A model generated the notes under the pieces. That model was not told where the DNA came from. It did no database searches and was given only the letters and a program-made list of their open reading frames with translations. 64,000 nucleotides of DNA, taken from Basidiobolus meristosporus CBS 931.73 (Eukaryota; Fungi; Basidiobolomycota). The first letter of the stretch is position 1, and each line of letters starts with the position of its first letter. The translations under genes and the position numbers were made by a program. The DNA lies in assembly GCA_002104905.1 (NCBI GenBank), contig MCFE01000210.1, forward strand, positions 1-64,000. The letters run 5' to 3'. Positions 6,701-55,610 of this stretch are shown one piece after another.

Positions 6701-9700
6701 TGCTGCGCGCTTGAGTGAGGCTTCTTCGTCTCCTTGGACTCGATGACATGATGCTCACTAGTGCGTGACGATATAAGCTCCTTTGACACATGGTTCGCGC
6801 TAGCGTGATGTTTTGCAGTTGATGAACCTGGTGGACCGGTAGGCATTGGTACTGTGCAGCTTGGAACGCCACTTATGATTGTACAAACATAACCAGATTC
6901 GCACAGCGATGTTTCTTCCCGTCCGTTGTTACATTTGACTATAACCGGGGATACATTTTCGGCCTTACAACCAGGTCTACAGGATCCATGTGCAGCTGGA
7001 CTAATTTTAGGCTTAATAATTCTATTTGATTCCGTACGGTAACGTTCACTAGAATAAGCTTTTCCAGTGCTCTTATCATTGGAAGTGTGACGATCACTCG
7101 AATTGGGTTGCTGAGTTTCTTTGGTAACTGGGACAAGGGCACTTGATTTAGTCTTCAGAGTGATACCTGATTTAGTATTAGATTTCAGAGTACTTGCAGA
7201 TCCAATATGATGTTGCGATGACATCTCATGATGCTCAGAGTTGTGAGACCTGTCAGTTTCCTGTGACGACTGATGATGCTCGCCGGATGAAGGCTTGTGG
7301 GTCTCCTTGGACTTCTCATGATGCTGGGTGGTGTGAGACTTTTCAGTTTCTTTTGAGGACTCGAGATGTTCGCTGGAAGAAGTTCTCTCAGTCCCCCTTG
7401 ACATTTCATGATGCTCGGTGATGTGAGACTTTTCAGTTCCCTTTGATGACTCATGATGCTCGCTGGAAGAAGCCTTATCGGTCTCCTTGGACTTCTCATG
7501 ATGCTCGGTGGTGTGAGACTTTTCAATTTCCTTGGAAGACTCATGATGCTTGCTGGAAGCAACTTTCTCGGTCTCCCGGGACTTCTCATTATGCTCGGTG
7601 GTTTGAGACTTTTTAGTTTCCGTTGACCACTCATGGTTCTTGCTGGAAGCAACCTTCTCAGTCTCTTTAGACTTCTCATGATGCTCGATGATGTGAGACT
7701 TCGCAGTTTCCGTTGACCACTCATGATGCTCGCTGGAAGAAGGCTTCTCCGTCGCCTTGGACTTCTCACGATGCTCGGTGGTGTGAGACTTTGCAGTTTC
7801 CTTGGAAGACTCATGGTGCTTGCTTGAAGAAGGCTTTCCGTGAGGCTCGCTAGAAGAAGGCTTCTCAGTCTCCGTGGACTTCTCATTATGCTCGGTGGTG
7901 TGAGACTTTGCAGTTTCCTTTGACGACCCATGGTGCTTGCTGGAAGAAGGCTTTCCGTGAGGCTCGCTAGTAGAAGGCTTCTCAGTCTCCTTGGACTTCT
8001 GATTATGCTCGGTGGTGTGAGACTTTGCAGTTTTCTTGGAAGACTCATGATGCTTGCTGGAATCAACCTTCTCGGTCTCCTTGGACTTCTCATGGCGATC
8101 GGTGGTGTGAGAATTTGCAGTTCCCTTTGACGACTCATGGTGCTTGCTGGAAGAAGGCTTTCCGTGAGGCTCGCTAGAAGAAGGCTTCTCAGTCTCCTTG
8201 GACTTCTCATTATGCTCCGTGGTGTGAGATTTTGCAGTTTCCTTGGAAGACTCATGATGCTTGCTGGAAGTAACCTTCTCGGTCTCCTTGGACTTCTCAC
8301 GATGCTCGGTGGTGTGAGACTTTGTAGTTTCCTTGGAAGACTCATGGTGCTTGCTTGAAGAAGGCTTCTCAGTCTCCTTGTACTTCTCATTATGCTCCGT
8401 GGTGTGAGATTTTGCAGTTTCCTTGGAAGACTCATGGTGCTTGCTGGAAGTTACCTTCTCGGTCTCCTTGGACTTCTCATGGTGCTCGGTGGTGTGAGAC
8501 TTTGCAGTTTCCTTGGAAGACTCATGATGCTTGCTGGAAGTAACCTTCTCGGTCTCCTTGGACTTCTCACGATGCTCGGTGGTGTGAGACTTTGTAGTTT
8601 CCTTGGAAGACTCATGGTGCTTGCTTGAAGAAGGCTTTCCGTGAGGCTCGCTAGAAGAAGGCTTCTCAGTCTCGTTGGACTTCTCATTATGCTCCGTGGT
8701 GTGAGACTTTGCAATTTCCTTTGATGAATCATGGTGCTTGCTGGAAGAAGGCTTTCCGTGAGGCTCGGTAGAAGAAGGCTTCTCAGTCTCCTTGGTCTTC
8801 TCATTATGCTCCGTGGTATGAGACTTTGCAGTTTCCTTGGAAGACTCATGATGCTTGCTGGAAGCAACCTTCTCGGTCTCCTTGGACTTCTCATGGCGAT
8901 CGGTGGTGTGAGAATTTGCAGTTCCCTTTGACGACTCATGGTGCTTGCTGGAAGAAGGCTTTCCGTGAGGCTCGCTAGAAGAAAGCTTCTCAGTCTCCTT
9001 GGACTTCTCATTATGCTCCGTGGTGTGAGATTTTGCAGTTTCCTTGGAAGACTCATGGTGCTTGCTGGAAGCAACCTTCTCGGTCTCTTCGGACTTCTCA
9101 TGATGCTCGATGGTGTGAGACTTTGCAATTTCCGTTGAAGGCTCATGATGCTTGCTGGAAGAAGGCTTTCCGTGAGGCTCGCTAGAAGAAGGCTTTCCGT
9201 GAGGCTCGCTAGAAGAAGGCTTCTCAGTCTCCTTGGTCTTCTCATTATGCTCCGTGGTGTGAGATTTTGCAGTTTCCTTGGAAGACTCATGGTGCTTGCT
9301 GGAAGTTACCTTCTCGGTCTCCTTGGACTTCTCGTGGTGCTCGGTGGTGTGAGACTTTGCAATTTCCGTTGAAGGCTCATGATGCTTGCTGGAAGAAGGC
9401 TTTCCGTGAGGCTCGCTAGAAGAAGGCTTTCCGTGAGGCTCGCTAGAAGAAGGCTTCTCAGTCTCCTTGGTCTTCTCATTATGCTCCGTGGTTTGAGACT
9501 TTGCAGTTTCCTTGGAAGACTCATGATGCTTGCTGGAAGCAACCTTCTCGGTCTCCTTGGACTTCTCATGGCGATCGGTGGTGTGAGATTTTGTAGGTTC
9601 CTTTGACGACTCATGGTGCTTGCTGGAAGTAAGCTTTCCGTGAGGCTCGCTAGAAGAAGGCTTCTCAGTCTCCTTGGACTTCTCATTATGCTCCGTGGTG

Positions 9701-12700
9701 TGAGATTTTGCAGTTTCCTTGGAAGACTCATGGTGCTTGCTGGAAGTGACCTTCTCGGTCTCCTTGGACTTCTCGTGGTGCTCGGTGGTGTGAGACTTTG
9801 CAGTTTCCTTGGAAGACTCATGATGCTTGCTGGAAGCAACCTTCTCGGTCTCCTTGGACTTCTCATGGCGATCGGTGGTGTGAGATTTTGTAGGTTCCTT
9901 TGACGACTCATGGTGCTTGCTGGAAGTAAGCTTTCCGTGAGGCTCGCTAGAAGAAGGCTTCTCAGTCTCCTTGGACTTCTCATTATGCTCCGTGGTGTGA
10001 GATTTTGCAGTTTCCTTGGAAGACTCATGGTGCTTGCTGGAAGTTACCTTCTCGGTCTCCTTGGACTTCTCGTGGTGCTCGGTGGTGTGAGACTTTGCAG
10101 TTTCCTTGGAAGACTCATGATGCTTGCTGGAAGCAACCTTCTCGGTCTCCTTGGACTTCTCATGGCGATCGGTGGTGTGAGATTTTGTAGGTTCCTTTGA
10201 CGACTCATGGTGCTTTCTGGAAGTAAGCTTTCCGTGAGGCTCGCTAGAAGAAGGCTTCTCAGTCTCCTTGGACTTCTCATTATGCTCCGTGGTGTGAGAT
10301 TTTGCAGTTTCCTTGGAAGACTCATGGTGCTTGCTGGAAGTTACCTTCTCGGTCTCCTTGGACTTCTCGTGGTGCTCGGTGGTGTGAGACTTTGCAATTT
10401 CCGTTGAAGGCTCATGATGCTTGCTGGAAGAAGGCTTTCCGTGAGGCTCGCTAGAAGAAGGCTTCGTAGTCGCCTTGGACTTCTCATGATGCTCGGTGGC
10501 GTGAGACTTTGCAGTTTTCTTGGAAGACTCATGATGCTCGCTGGAATTAACCTTCTCGGTCTCCTGGGACTTCTCATGATGCTTGGTGGTTTGAGACTTT
10601 GTAGTTTCCTTTGACGACTCATGGTGCTTGCTGGAAGAAAGCTTTCCATGAGGCTCGCTAGAAGAAGGCCTCTCAGTCTCCTTGGATTTCTCATCATGCT
10701 CGGTGGTGTGAGACTTTTGTGTTTCCTTGGAAGACTCATGATGCTTGCTGGAAGCAACCTTCTCGGTCTCCTTGGACTTCTGATCATGCTCGGTGGTATG
10801 AGACTTTGCAATTTCCGTTGAAGACTCATGATGCTCGCTGGAAGTAACCTTCTCAGTCTCCTTGGACTTCTCATGATACCCCTTGGTTTGAGACTTTACA
10901 ATCTCCTTTGACGACTCATGGTGCTTGCCGGAAGAAGGCTTTCCGTGAGGCTCGCTAGTAGAAGGCTTCTCAGTCTCCTTGGACTTCTCATGATGCTCGG
11001 TGGTGTGAGACTTTTCAATTTCCTTGGAGGACTCATGATGCTTGCTGGAAGTAGGCTTCTCCATTTCTGTTGAATATTTGTTAAATTCGCTGGAAGTAGT
11101 CTGCTCTGGCTGCTTGGACTTCTCATCGTGCTCACTTGAGTTTGGTTTCTCGGAGCTTTCATGATATTTGCTTGAGCTTGGCTTTTCATGCCGTTTGCTT
11201 GAAGGAGAAGTGTTATTCTTAGCCGTTTTGCTTATTTGGGTGGTTGGCTCCGAATTTGAATGGGTGCTCGCTGATGTTGGTGGAGGTACCGAAGATCTTG
11301 GTGGTGGAGGAGGTGGAAACGATGGCTTAGGAAGTTCACAAGATGGTATTCCATTGACCATTGCGCAAAGGTAACCATCCTGACAAGAAGATTTCTCCTG
11401 TTTTCCATTTCTACATTTGATTATTACTGGAGATTCGTTTTCGGCTTCACAGCCTGGAATGCACTTGACTTCAGGGGGCGTGCTGGAGTGAGTTTTAGCT
11501 GTTTTGCTTATTTGGGTGCCTGGCTCTGAATTTGGCTTGTTGCTAGCTGATGTTGGTGGTGGTGGTGGTGGTGGAAGCGATGGCTTAGGAAGCTCACAAG
11601 ATGGTATTCCATTGACCATTGCGCAAAGGTAACCATCCTGACAAGAAGATTTCTCCTGTTTTCCATTTTTACATTTGATTATTACTGGAGATGCGTTTTC
11701 GGCTTCACAGCCTGGAATGCACTTGACTTCAGGGGGCGTGCTGGAGTGAGTTTTAGCTGTTTTGCTTATTTGGGTGCCTGGCTCTGAATTTGGCTTGTTG
11801 CTAGCTGATGTTGGTGGTGGTGGTGGTGGTGGAAGCGATGGCTTAGGGAGCTCACAAGATGGTATTCCATTGACCATTGCGCAAAGGTAACCATCTTGGC
11901 AAGAGGATTTCTCCTGTTTTCCATTTTTACATTTGATTATTACTGGAGATGCGTTTTCGGCTTCACATCCTGGAATGCACTTGACCGCAGGCGTTGCACT
12001 CGAATGAGGCTCCTCAGTTTGACTGCGTTGCTCTTTACTTGTCTTCTTGCTCGAGGATGCTGCTGGGGATGGTGGTGGTGATTGCGTTGGCTTAAGTTGT
12101 TTACAGGATGGTACCCCCTTTACCATCGCGCACACAAATCCATCCCGACACGCAGATCTTTTCTCAACTCCATTTTCACATTTGATGATCCATGGCGATA
12201 CGTTTTCGGCTTCACAGCCTGCTACACATATGCTATTAGTGGCACTAGTAGTATGAAACTTCGCTGGCTTGGATCTTGAGCTGCTTGCTGGTGTGGATTT
12301 CGACGGTGTTTTGGGAGATACCGGCTTCATTGTTTCCTTCGGCTTATTACCGGAGTTATTTGACACTGGGTGGTGTTGGGCACTGGAATGAAGCTCTTCC
12401 GATTTCTGTTTTGGTTGCAATGTTAACTTCTCAATATACTCAGGTCAGTTCATATAATAATTACCTTTGTATTTGGCATGGTGCTTATCGAACCACTGAG
12501 TGACGGTTGCGGAGGAATGCATACAGGCGTATTTCCCCGCATTTGACAAGTATATCCTTGACCACACTCATTCATGGTTGTTACACCATTGTAGCATACT
12601 TTCATCATTCCATTTACGCATTCACTGATGCAGTTGCTGGATTTACTTGTAGAGGTGGCCGATATTTGTTTCGGACTCGAAATTTCATTGCTTTCCACGA

Positions 12701-51273: not shown

Positions 51274-51652
51274 ATGGTGGTGAGTAGTGCTTCTAATATT
51301 CTCTAACAAATTAATCTGACATTCTCTCAGCTTGCTGTAGATCTTCTCAACCCTACTTTTGAACATGAGAAAAACACTCATAAGCTTAAGAGATTAGTCC
51401 AATCTCCCAACTCTTACTTCATGGACGTCAAATGCCCAGGCTGCTTCAACATCACCACAGTTTTCAGCCACGCCCAGACTGTTGTGCTTTGCGGTTCTTG
51501 TGCTACTGTCCTTTGTCAACCTACTGGTGGTCGCGCTCGTTTGACTGAAGGTATTTGCGGCGCCCTATTAAGCTCCATTGCCTATAATAACCCAAACCCT
51601 AACCTCAATATTCGTTTGATCAGGATGCTCCTTCCGTAAGAAGGCGAACTAA
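51274..51652 (+). CDS. RPS27: 40S ribosomal protein eS27, 84 aa, 3 exons
   Basis: Exons 51274-51279, 51331-51550 and 51624-51652 give [10 protein letters not shown]...[52 protein letters not shown]. Confidence 0.98.
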
Positions 51653-51964: not shown

Positions 51965-52943
51965 CTATTGCAGCAAGACTCTGCCATCCGACCAATATTG
52001 ATCGCCGTAATCGACAAAGATCTCTTCGTTTGGCAAAATGTCCCGTAACGCCACGTAGAAAATGTGCCAGAGGTTGTCATGAACGCTGTACATCGATTGT
52101 GCATTTTGTAGCTCTAAGATACGAGGGTTAGCTTTGTTTGGTAGGATTCAAGTATTGTTGACTCACTTGTGTTGTGGTTTGCAAAACGAAGGTAGTTTCC
52201 AACATTCAGCGAATCGACGCTTAAATCTACTTGATAAGAATCCTTGTCCACGACAACACTATCGAGGTAGCTGTATTGCCATGCGTATGCGCCATCGAGT
52301 GTATTATTGGTGAGTAGGCCTGATCAGCAAAGTTAGTAAGAGCCCAATATGTGCCATGCATCTTCTATATTACCAGTATACAGTCCGACGATCGTTCCCT
52401 CAGGTATCAGTTCGCATGTAAATAATCCCCATTTGATAATGTCGTTTATCCAACGCACATAGAGCCGCTCATCGTCGTTATGGTCCTTGATGATTTCTGC
52501 ATATTCGCTGAATACCTCGACATTCTCCATGATCTCCTCGATGTCGTCCTCATTTTCCATGAAGTCGAATGGGGTTGCCCCGGTTATCCATTCCTCGATT
52601 TCTTTATCAACGACCATATGGTTCACAGGAGTGATGTTGAACGCATCCTGGAAATCTGGCATGTGATACCGACGGTATACATAAGCATCGTTGTGGTATA
52701 GACCAGGCTTGAATAGGGAGAGCTCAGAGTTCACGTTTATAGGTTTATCTTAGAGGATGGTGTTGTTAGTAGGAATCGCCACTGACTGGTATATGTTTGA
52801 CCAACCTCCCCGAACTAGAAGTAGGTGACTGATTACGGCGAGCATTCCGATCACCTGTGAAAATGTTTAGTGATGGCCTAGCGATGGCCTAGTGATTGCC
52901 AGCTCAAAATTACCATGGTGTTACTTGGGATTGTGAGTTTCAT
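51965..52943 (-). CDS. SET-domain protein (putative lysine methyltransferase) with N-terminal signal peptide, 251 aa, 5 exons
   Basis: Exons 52943-52914, 52854-52806, 52748-52374, 52319-52167 and 52113-51965 (756 nt). Introns are 53-59 nt with CTAA(C) branch sites. Motifs WGLF...IPEGTIVGLYTG, GNYLRFANH and EEIFVDYGDQYW. TATA about 45 nt upstream. Confidence 0.88.
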
Positions 52944-53224
52944 CAGACGAAAGAGGTTATGGCTGGCTGTAATAACTACCAGACAACTTTATATAGACTA
53001 TGGGTGTGTGCGTGTGTGTGGGTGTGTGTGTGCGTGTGGGATACATGTGACTCTTGCAGATCAGTTTCAAAGGCATAGGCGACACTAACCCATATGTTTA
53101 TTCATGCAATGCTAGAAGCGATGTGATTGTTGTTAGTATCTGAAATGGTAGTACTTTCACCAACACATATTTGTAATATTCTTATTATACCGCCACTGTT
53201 GCTATCAGGGTTGCTCTTTGGGTC

Positions 53225-53315
53225 AGATACCTGAGCTATAGATTCGTTTATTTTCCTGAGACTAGATATCTGAGCTATACATTCGTCTATTACCCTGAGA
53301 CTAGATACTTAAGCT
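53225..53315. repeat. 39-bp minisatellite, about 2.3 copies
   Basis: agatacctgagctatagattcgtttattttcctgagact / agatatctgagctatacattcgtctattaccctgagact / agatacttaagct. Confidence 0.8.
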
Positions 53316-53567: not shown

Positions 53568-55610
53568 ATGAAACTGGCTATCTTTTACTTCGGCTCCCTT
53601 CCATTGGGAAGTGCTCTTCGTCAATTTTCTCCGCAAGATCTTGCGAGTGTTGCAAAATATGGTGCAGCCGTTCCTTCCCCAGATGGACTCTGGGCAGTTT
53701 TCTCAGGCACCCGTTATTCTATAGTTGAGAATAGCAATATCCATAGTTTGTGGAAGCTGAACATGAAAAATGGGCAGATAACTGCGTTAATTACCGGCAC
53801 CCGTGGCAAATATGCAACGCCTCTATGGTTAGATCACATTACAGTCGGTTTTCTTTCTAACCGCTCAAGATCCGAGCAGTTGTGGTCAATTGACATATCG
53901 AATCCCAAGGCTCAGCCACTACAAGTCACCAACTTCAGTCTTGGCATCAGCAATATCAAGTACAACATGAATACCAAGCTTCTTGCTTTCACCTCGGCAG
54001 TGTACAATGATGGATCTATGGAGAACGCGATAAAAATCGATGCCGCTAACAAAAAACGCACCGACACTGCACTGGTGTACGACCAATTGATGATTAGACA
54101 TTGGGACACGTTTATATCCAAGAAAAGAAAAAACATATTTACAGTCCGGCTGCAAAAGAGAGCCAATAGATATTCTGCCAAATCTGTGCCTATCAATGTT
54201 ATGAAAAAAACGCCAGCTCAGCCTTTCGGGAATTCGGTTGATTATGATATCTCTCCTGATGGCAAAGAGATTGCCTTTAGTGGCAGAAAATTGACAAGAG
54301 ACTATGCCTGGAACACCGACATCGACATATATGTTGTCCCATCTGATGGAAGCCAGTCACCAAAATCCCTCACCGACGATAATTTTGCTTCAGCCTCATC
54401 GCCAGCCTATTCTCCAAATGGATTGCATCTGGCTTGGCTTCAAATGGAAAGACCTGGCTATGAATCTGACCGCAGAAGAATTATCCTCCAAGATCGACTT
54501 TCGAACAGCGTGAGCTATCTGCACAAAGACTGGGATCGTAGCCCTAATAAAATCATTTGGTCCAGCGACTCCAACTCTCTTTTTCTACCTACGAAAGAAC
54601 ACGGTCGAGTGAAGCTCTTTTCCGCTAACATCAAGAATGGAGCAATACAGCCAATCGTAAATGAACACACCACCTCTTCGGTCCACCCTTTGAATCCGAA
54701 CAAGCTACTTTTAACCCAAAGCTCCATGAACAGACCAAGCGAATTCTTCACCGTAAAAACGGATGGCTCTGGGTTCAAGCAAGAGACGCAGCTTCACAAT
54801 GCCACCATCCATAATTTCTTCCTTCCGAGGCCAGAGGAATTTTGGTTTGAAGGTGCAGAAGGGGATCAAGTTCACGGGTGGTTGCTCAAACCCTTTGGCT
54901 TCAAAGCTGAGAAGAAATATCCGGTAGCCTTTTTTGTCCATGGAGGCCCTCAGGGCGCTTGGTCAGATGGTTGGAGCAGTAGTTGGAACCTTCCACTTTT
55001 TGCCTCTGCAGGATTTGTGGTTGTTGCTATTAACCCACGCGGGTCTACGGGCTACGGTCAGCGGTTTACTGACCAGGTTCAACAAAGCTGGGGTGGTCGA
55101 CCATACGTCGACTTGATAAAGGGTTTAGATTATATCCTCCAGACTCGCCAATACACCAATTCGGACTTGGTTTGTGGCCTTGGAGGAAGTTATGGTGGAT
55201 ACATGATGAACTGGATAAATGGTCATTCTGACAAATTCAAATGCCTGGTCGCTCACGATGGCAAATTCTCGCTCCTCTCGGGCTATTACTCTACTGACGA
55301 ACTTTGGTTTCCGGAGAGTGAGATGGGGGGACCCCCTTGGGAGCCAGAGGCGCGAAAGAATTACGAAAAATGGTCACCATCGAATTATGTTCAGAATTGG
55401 AAAACCCCCACGCTGATTATCCATGGTGCCCGTGACTATCGTGTTGCGGAAACTGAATCATTCTCCACTTTTACTGCTTTACAGCGTCAAAATATCCCTT
55501 CACGACTAGTCTACTTTCCTGATGAAACACATTGGGTGAGAAAGCCAGCCAACGTCCTTCGCTGGCATGGCGAAATGCTGGCATGGATCAAGAAGTGGAC
55601 CAGAGGATGA
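53568..55610 (+). CDS. DPP5: Secreted S9 peptidase, dipeptidyl-peptidase V-like
   Basis: Signal-like start, beta-propeller repeats, HGGPQGAW, catalytic GGSYGG, HGARDYRV and FPDETHW. Intronless. Confidence 0.9.
   Translation: MKLAIFYFGSLPLGSALRQFSPQDLASVAKYGAAVPSPDGLWAVFSGTRYSIVENSNIHSLWKLNMKNGQITALITGTRGKYATPLWLDHITVGFLSNRSRSEQLWSIDISNPKAQPLQVTNFSLGISNIKYNMNTKLLAFTSAVYNDGSMENAIKIDAANKKRTDTALVYDQLMIRHWDTFISKKRKNIFTVRLQKRANRYSAKSVPINVMKKTPAQPFGNSVDYDISPDGKEIAFSGRKLTRDYAWNTDIDIYVVPSDGSQSPKSLTDDNFASASSPAYSPNGLHLAWLQMERPGYESDRRRIILQDRLSNSVSYLHKDWDRSPNKIIWSSDSNSLFLPTKEHGRVKLFSANIKNGAIQPIVNEHTTSSVHPLNPNKLLLTQSSMNRPSEFFTVKTDGSGFKQETQLHNATIHNFFLPRPEEFWFEGAEGDQVHGWLLKPFGFKAEKKYPVAFFVHGGPQGAWSDGWSSSWNLPLFASAGFVVVAINPRGSTGYGQRFTDQVQQSWGGRPYVDLIKGLDYILQTRQYTNSDLVCGLGGSYGGYMMNWINGHSDKFKCLVAHDGKFSLLSGYYSTDELWFPESEMGGPPWEPEARKNYEKWSPSNYVQNWKTPTLIIHGARDYRVAETESFSTFTALQRQNIPSRLVYFPDETHWVRKPANVLRWHGEMLAWIKKWTRG

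Follow-up and report, generated by a model that had tools for sequence, protein, structure and literature searches.

Does an early-diverging fungus make a SET-domain lysine methyltransferase that acts outside the cytosol and nucleus? The question is raised by a gene on the minus strand (52943..51965) of a 64,000-nt window of Basidiobolus meristosporus CBS 931.73 (positions 1 to 64,000 of contig MCFE01000210.1, assembly GCA_002104905.1), in which an earlier note, made from the letters alone, had seen a signal peptide in front of a minimal, bacterial-style SET domain. Coordinates without another contig name refer to this window, and the parts of the gene are given on its minus strand. We found that the gene is intact, conserved and under purifying selection, and that its product is a SET protein with a complete set of SET motifs. 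Judging from the sequences of the protein and its relatives, a secretory-pathway or secreted SET enzyme is our leading reading, which we hold with some reserve.

The gene consists of five exons that give a coding sequence of 756 nt and 251 aa, or 242 aa if translation begins at Met10. The introns 1, 2, 3 and 4 are 59, 57, 54 and 53 nt long, all of them are bounded by GT..AG, and TACTAAC/CTAAC-type branch points, the fungal pattern, were found in three of the four. Exon 1 (52914..52943) contains an upstream in-frame ATG (52943-52941) and the conserved start ATG (52916-52914), the latter being followed directly by a GTAATT donor. The upstream ATG is species-specific and lies in a poor context, and its use would add the M-K-containing n-region MKLTIPSNT; the conserved ATG, at which the public model P0002 also begins, comes to stand in the context ACCATGG once spliced. 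A TATA-like TATATAAA box, read directly at 52988..52995 on the minus strand, precedes the first in-frame ATG by about 45 nt, and both copies of the gene in B. ranarum have TATA-like boxes 75-95 nt upstream of the ATG as well. Intron 1 (52855..52913) contains an 11-bp repeat in three copies. Exon 2 (52806..52854, 49 nt) encodes the hydrophobic core of the predicted signal peptide together with its final V-R-G; the phase-1 boundary at the end of this exon coincides exactly with the predicted cleavage site. Intron 2 (52749..52805) is bounded by GT..AAG and has a TACTAAC branch point; its AG has the same position in B. ranarum, and a phase-1 intron occurs at the same place in the B. meristosporus paralogue P0004. 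Exon 3 (52374..52748, 375 nt) encodes the mature N-terminus, a family-specific nSET-like module consisting of a beta-hairpin and three helices, and the start of the SET domain up to G-L-Y-T. Intron 3 (52320..52373, phase 1) splits the Y-x-G motif between Y-T and G, exon 4 (52167..52319, 153 nt) encodes the middle of the SET domain including G-N-Y-L-R-F-A-N-H, and intron 4 (52114..52166, phase 1) follows N-H-N-T; the positions of both introns are common to P0004 and the Acaulospora protein P0008. Exon 5 (51965..52113, 149 nt) encodes the C-terminal part of the SET domain with a catalytic-type Tyr in V-D-Y-G and an aromatic Y-W tail, and ends with the stop codon TAG at 51967-51965. The five-exon, four-intron structure proposed in the earlier note was confirmed, with the start and the end of the 251-aa translation as it gave them, and all of the motifs that it named (LYVRWINDIIKWGLF, GLYTG, GNYLRFANH and VDYGDQYW) were found in the translation. 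Its description of the gene as visible only in a 133-aa fragment holds for the open reading frame (ORF) track only; public annotation already has the 242-aa P0002, which is 100% identical, starts from Met10 and is named "SET domain-containing protein".

The splice junctions, as we place them, rest on comparison with B. ranarum. The assembly of this species (GCA_040143965.1) contains two diverged, fully syntenic copies (L001 4744-5709 and L002 3001-3997), which reflect either a duplicated genome or two divergent haplotypes. Exact exon-walking of genomic DNA, from which the final exon tables were made, gave exon lengths in both copies that agree with those of the B. meristosporus gene: 3 or 9 nt for exon 1, then 49, 375, 153 and 149 nt. 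A GTAA donor comes immediately after the start ATG in each of the three genes (ATG at L001 4744-4746 and L002 3001-3003), and exon 2 is 49 nt long with a phase-1 end after V-(R/Q)-G. The 17-aa hydrophobic leader ends with V-Q-G before D in both B. ranarum copies and with V-R-G before D in B. meristosporus. Identity within the leader is 38-50%, versus 73-88% over the rest of the protein, while hydrophobicity and the residues at -3 and -1 are retained, which is the usual behaviour of signal peptides. Between the two species the nonsynonymous divergence (dN) is 0.12 and the synonymous divergence (dS) is saturated or undefined, so that purifying selection is stated from dN and qualitatively. Since non-coding sequence would have lost the structure of exons 1 and 2 at a saturated dS, its retention indicates that these exons are not due to chance. 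By the same comparison of genomic sequences, Met10 is taken as the conserved start; the upstream ATG at 52943 has no counterpart in either B. ranarum copy.

Public annotation is not uniform with respect to the leader. One B. ranarum copy (P0016) is annotated with it, and the model of the other (P0001, on L001) begins at an internal Met, with the leader exons intact upstream. P0001 and the less common AAG acceptor of intron 2 would both fit an ordinary cytosolic or nuclear SET protein translated from the internal Met, with exons 1 and 2 as a modelling artefact. However, when the DNA upstream of the P0001 model is included, exons of 3, 49, 375, 153 and 149 nt are obtained, and their 242-aa reading frame is intact and begins with a hydrophobic leader, P0016 and P0002 are both annotated with the leader, and a TATA box lies just upstream of the gene. 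In addition, the region upstream of the internal Met is conserved as protein between species (dN/dS ~0.05, with dS saturated), and three family-invariant residues, Y40, Y42 and R43, lie between the leader and that Met, which rules out the short internal-Met model. An artefact of this kind is very improbable.

The leader itself has the anatomy of a signal peptide. Its best 15-residue window begins at residue 1 with a mean Kyte-Doolittle value of 2.53, residues 2-15 are hydrophobic, and V and G stand at -3 and -1. It is too short for a transmembrane helix and has the h-region and the -3/-1 residues of a classical endoplasmic reticulum (ER) signal peptide, in agreement with the earlier note, which had described a hydrophobic leader that ends in VRG and would also work from Met10. 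In the three orthologues, as in the paralogue P0004, the predicted cleavage site coincides exactly with a phase-1 intron, and the charge difference across the leader, read from the sequences, favours an N-in/C-out orientation in all three orthologues. The predicted mature protein has 225 aa, a mass of 26.4 kDa and an isoelectric point (pI) of 4.3, and a scan of it found no basic cluster, no nuclear localization signal (NLS) and no ER-retention tail. It carries N-x-T sequons at N55 and N147 that are partly conserved, N147 being kept in 7 of 13 family modules; the family has 28 sequons versus 18.9 expected, a modest excess and weak evidence, as the proteins are not independent. Mitochondrial targeting by a presequence with stop-transfer was considered and rejected for the Basidiobolus leader, which has no basic amphipathic part; for relatives that combine a basic N-terminal tail with a transmembrane helix, it is possible.

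The domain behind the leader is a SET domain. Pfam SET (PF00856) matched P0002 at residues 124-230 with an E-value of 5.4e-16 and 59.4 bits against a cut-off of 22.4, a stretch that spans 52004..52431 of the genome with two introns within it; a weaker match to PRDM2_PR overlaps it, and no other Pfam domain was matched in this protein. Five relatives of P0002 also match Pfam SET, and exon 5 does so by itself. The SET motifs G125 (W-G-L-F), Y141-x-G143, R187-F188-x-N190-H191 and Y229 (D-Y-G) are invariant or nearly so across the family and align to the same motifs of Chaetomium EZH2. To judge from these residues, the domain is complete in its motifs for catalysis and for binding of S-adenosylmethionine (SAM). 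The mature protein has a single Cys, which rules out a pre-SET or post-SET zinc cluster, and Pfam finds no flanking domain, in agreement with the minimal SET without pre- or post-SET cysteines described before; the pre-SET, AWS/CXC and post-SET Cys clusters of SUV39/EZH/SET2-type SETs are all lacking. In the AlphaFold model (mean pLDDT 76, pTM 0.71), an N-terminal helix (2-14) and a disordered linker are followed by a beta-hairpin and three helices (33-106) and then by the SET fold. The product is thus predicted to have three parts: a signal peptide of 17 residues, an nSET-like module of ~95 residues and a SET domain of ~130 residues.

Is the hydrophobic N-terminus a property of this gene or of a family? 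An exhaustive phmmer search with exon 3 returned 14 proteins at E <= 0.001. The matches P0003 and P0006, which showed many matched stretches, were rejected as spurious because they are low-complexity repeat proteins. The named members of the family are the Basidiobolus paralogues P0004 and P0009, proteins of Acaulospora and Entrophospora (Glomeromycota) and a protein of Powellomyces hirtus (Chytridiomycota), and the remaining members come from metagenome contigs. All sequence-detectable relatives are eukaryotic; one of the metagenome contigs, L003, is assigned to a eukaryote because its split guanylate-kinase gene indicates introns. By Kyte-Doolittle analysis, most members with a complete N-terminus have a hydrophobic N-terminal segment. 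It lies at the extreme N-terminus in the three orthologues, and in P0008, P0013, P0012, P0015, P0011, P0014, P0009 and a 308-aa protein of L003 a hydrophobic helix lies behind a tail of ~12-40 residues (a transmembrane helix with a tail of ~16 residues in the L003 protein). The net charge of the tail is +2 to +7 in P0008, P0012, P0013 and P0015, which have a type II layout, and 0 to +1 in most others. When the positive-inside rule is applied to this layout of tail and helix, the SET domain of the anchored relatives would lie on the exoplasmic side. Neither a family of this kind nor a eukaryotic SET protein bearing a secretion signal or an N-terminal anchor was described in the papers returned by a literature search.

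Several loci of the family have features of their own. L003 (JGI metagenome 3300047129) carries at least three family paralogues within 20 kb (8172-9098, 10001-10870 and 20824 to the end), apparently intron-less. The metagenome protein P0010 (521 aa) has two or three nSET-SET modules in one ORF, and its gene stands beside p25-alpha and MFS genes. In Acaulospora morrowiae (L008 1501-3866), the last exon of the public model P0008 lies 1.1 kb downstream, so that the C-terminal SET motifs are missing; this is probably an error of the model, and a nearer 3' exon is likely to be the true one. The gene directly 3' of the family member of Powellomyces hirtus (L007 2982-3927) belongs to the mitochondrial carrier family (Mito_carr). 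SAM carriers are members of that family, and the neighbourhood is probably a coincidence.

For the Basidiobolus protein, the leader would lead to co-translational entry into the ER and place the catalytic domain on the exoplasmic side; cleavage after V-R-G (G17) would then deliver a soluble, acidic 26-kDa enzyme to the secretory pathway or the medium. In the relatives, the enzyme would stay tethered in the manner of a type II Golgi enzyme. In either form its substrates would be lysines of proteins that are luminal, secreted or at the cell surface, with SAM as the methyl donor. Type II Golgi enzymes such as glycosyltransferases and plant pectin methyltransferases share with the relatives a short basic tail, one helix, a variable stem and a catalytic domain, and plant Golgi methylation relies on imported SAM (10.1101/2021.07.06.451061). 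These enzymes differ in having another catalytic fold, and the presumed substrate here is protein lysine rather than polysaccharide. The B. meristosporus protein in addition departs from their layout, having no tail and a short h-region that looks cleavable.

Several observations weigh against a luminal or secreted enzyme. The Golgi SAM importers returned by the literature search were all from plants and none was fungal; indeed, we know of no fungal Golgi SAM importer. With one Cys, the mature protein has no disulfide signature. By Kyte-Doolittle analysis, P0004, P0018 and P0007 are without a clear hydrophobic N-terminus, although the N-terminus of P0004 is aromatic-rich and the models of P0018 and P0007 may be incomplete, and flank charges are ambiguous in some members, for example P0011 and the 308-aa protein of L003. 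Lastly, there is the case of METTL9, a protein methyltransferase for which an 18-aa signal peptide is predicted: in cells permeabilised with digitonin, antibody reached METTL9 but not a luminal Golgi control, which points to the cytosolic face of the Golgi (PMC12313917). METTL9 resembles the Basidiobolus protein in its short predicted N-terminal signal peptide and its association with the secretory pathway, and it differs in being a seven-beta-strand histidine methyltransferase of unrelated fold. Since METTL9 points to the cytosolic Golgi face, luminal topology of a methyltransferase cannot be taken as proven by a predicted leader.

METTL9 is a direct precedent for the main competing explanation, a membrane-tethered SET enzyme that keeps its helix uncleaved in the ER, the Golgi or the nuclear envelope and has its SET domain on the cytosolic or nucleoplasmic side. 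There the enzyme would have access to SAM and to the usual substrates, the mature protein has no disulfide signature, the characterised SET enzymes returned by our searches are all nuclear or cytosolic, and many of the relatives have full-length transmembrane helices rather than signal peptides. On the other hand, the hydrophobic core of the Basidiobolus protein, ~14 residues that include Ser and His, is rather short to serve as a stable anchor, the pattern of small residues at -3 and -1 is kept in the three orthologues, and the basic N-side flanks of four homologues (+2 to +7) point to an N-in/C-out orientation with the SET domain across the membrane. We regard a cytosol-facing enzyme as rather unlikely, and continue to prefer entry into the secretory pathway.

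Where does the family come from? The earlier note had likened the protein to compact chlamydial SETs and suggested an old horizontal transfer from bacteria. At the level of fold the likeness was borne out. The best ESM Atlas clusters were one of 204 aa and one of 338 aa, of which 93% and 100%, respectively, are bacterial, with Chlamydiota as the commonest phylum in each, and the first superposed on residues 31-239 with a TM-score of 0.67 by query and 0.79 by hit (186 residues at 2.8 Å); plant ATXR5-type proteins ranked next after the chlamydial clusters. Matches to AFDB clusters carry no organism names and have no bearing on the origin of the gene. Among solved structures, the best match was to the plant H3K27 monomethyltransferases ATXR5 and ATXR6 (PDB 5VA6 and 4O30; ~200 columns including the helical nSET, Foldseek E-value 4.5e-11), and ATXR5 was also the best match among Swiss-Prot models. 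These plant enzymes differ from the Basidiobolus protein in that identity is 16-18% and in that they are nuclear and have a PHD finger (100% of the ATXR5-type cluster), whereas the Basidiobolus protein has only SET/PRDM2_PR by Pfam and a secretion-type leader. In a profile search of PDB, EZH2, MLL1 and G9a scored E-values of 1e-15 to 1e-13, versus 3.5e-12 for Legionella LegAS4.

Acquisition of the gene from Chlamydiae-like bacteria by horizontal transfer, with introns gained afterwards, would agree with the chlamydial nature of the nearest predicted-structure clusters, with the second rank of a chlamydial cluster by language-model features and with the compact architecture without eukaryotic accessory domains. 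However, plant ATXR5 matches the structure equally well, the PDB profile matches favour eukaryotic SETs, and the relatives that can be detected by sequence are without exception eukaryotic. Pattern scans of 185,579 bacterial and archaeal genomes, with the single protein and with a 4-sequence alignment, found no relative, nor did a scan of viral contigs, and a scan of metagenome contigs gave two short fragments only; such scans use short exact patterns and may miss distant relatives. Furthermore, the phase-1 introns within Y-x-G (before the G) and after N-H-x-x are common to the window gene, P0004 and P0008 of Acaulospora. These two introns predate the split of the phyla concerned, which indicates that the gene is old in fungi and not a recent bacterial transfer. 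In the family tree, the orthologue clade (100/99) is joined next by P0004 (85/81) and then by the Glomeromycota (85/79), with deeper nodes poorly resolved; the tree, which is compatible with vertical descent, contains family members only and is rooted at the midpoint, 7 of its 13 inner branches have less than 80% support, and outgroups are long-branched. A bacterial source is therefore the least credible of the explanations weighed here, and we give it very little weight. The direction of any ancient SET transfer between chlamydiae and eukaryotes is debated (PMC3980110), and a very ancient relationship among compact nSET-SET proteins, before the split of Zoopagomycota and Glomeromycota, is possible. 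As to the alternative that the earlier note had itself allowed for, ordinary vertically inherited cytosolic SETs, the homologues are indeed vertically inherited, but they are not ordinary, for they share an N-terminal targeting or anchor segment.

The resemblance to chlamydial proteins also bears on function, because the earlier note had considered a fungal effector, that is, a secreted enzyme that would methylate the histones of another cell after entry into it, in the manner of NUE or RomA/LegAS4. The chlamydial NUE/CT737 and cpnSET family has proteins of ~200 aa with an nSET-like module and a SET domain and without Cys-rich pre- or post-SET, and they are exported from the producing cell (PMC3980110). 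They leave the cell through type III secretion instead of being directed by a Sec/ER signal peptide, and they have NLS-type basic clusters (PMC3980110), of which the Basidiobolus protein has none; the pattern scans of bacterial genomes found no sequence relative, and the Basidiobolus gene has introns shared across fungal phyla. RomA/LegAS4 (PDB 5CZY) is likewise a secreted enzyme with a SET domain, at a similar profile score (3.5e-12, no better than EZH2, MLL1 or G9a). It is described as a type IV secretion substrate with ankyrin repeats (PMC10653858), and Pfam finds no Ank in the Basidiobolus protein. Apart from the resemblance of fold, the Basidiobolus protein thus lacks the features of secreted bacterial SET effectors and is the product of an intron-bearing eukaryotic gene.

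A host-directed role would be consistent with the signal-peptide-like leader, with the superposition of the mature protein on the compact chlamydial SET clusters, which is its best, and with an acidic enzyme that could bind basic histone tails; the occurrence of Basidiobolus in animal guts (10.1101/2025.03.31.646025) was also counted in its favour. Against it, the mature protein with its pI of 4.3 has neither an NLS or basic cluster nor an uptake motif or extra domain. The members in the arbuscular Glomeromycota, Powellomyces and metagenome eukaryotes are membrane-anchored rather than free, and some stand in tandem paralogue arrays, a pattern more in keeping with a resident enzyme of housekeeping type than with an effector that is translocated. 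Powellomyces is a soil saprobe. Moreover, the region of the gene is not a variable one: its position between genes for a ribosomal protein and a peptidase is conserved in synteny. An effector is unlikely, being the least parsimonious of the secretory options, and we regard it as improbable. Taken together, the gene, the leader and the SET domain observed in the earlier note were confirmed, and its interpretation was partly supported: a bacterial origin found no support within the reach of the data, and the effector role is a weak reading.

The surroundings of the gene are those of its B. ranarum orthologues. The order peptidase S9, SET, ribosomal eS27 and IML1 is found in both B. ranarum copies, and the SET gene of the window has matching neighbours. 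The first exon of the gene for ribosomal protein eS27 lies at ~51421-51650 on the plus strand, tail-to-tail with the SET gene. Head-to-head with the SET gene, an intron-less 680-aa ORF with a signal-peptide-like N-terminus (MKLAIFYFGSLPLGSA) occupies 53568-55610 on the plus strand, and looks like the counterpart of the 684-aa Peptidase_S9 gene of B. ranarum (L001 840-2894); the SET gene and this adjoining ORF may share a promoter region of ~600 bp. Tandem repeats are found near the 5' end of the SET gene: the 11-bp repeat of intron 1 occupies 52868-52900, a GT-rich microsatellite (53001-53040) lies immediately upstream of the TATA box, and a 39-bp repeat in 2.3 copies (53225-53315) is intergenic.

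Public annotation already contains the gene, and what is new is the reading of the family. From the N-terminal sequences of its members, we tentatively suggest that this family may be the first eukaryotic SET lysine methyltransferase on the exoplasmic side, in the lumen of the ER or Golgi, at the cell surface or in the medium. In Basidiobolus, what was a type II anchor in the ancestor would then have become a signal peptide that can be cleaved, so that the enzyme is released. If this is true, the secretory pathway of fungi would have to receive SAM by a route not yet recognised, and early-diverging fungi would carry methylated lysines on secreted or cell-wall proteins. A luminal or secreted enzyme would raise the questions of which proteins are methylated, how SAM arrives and whether gut and root fungi release such enzymes. 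If the enzyme instead faces the cytosol, the family would represent a new class of membrane-tethered SET proteins restricted to early-diverging fungi. In either case, this small family, whose orthologues carry a cleavable-type leader or an anchor, offers a convenient test case for topology, glycosylation and secretion.

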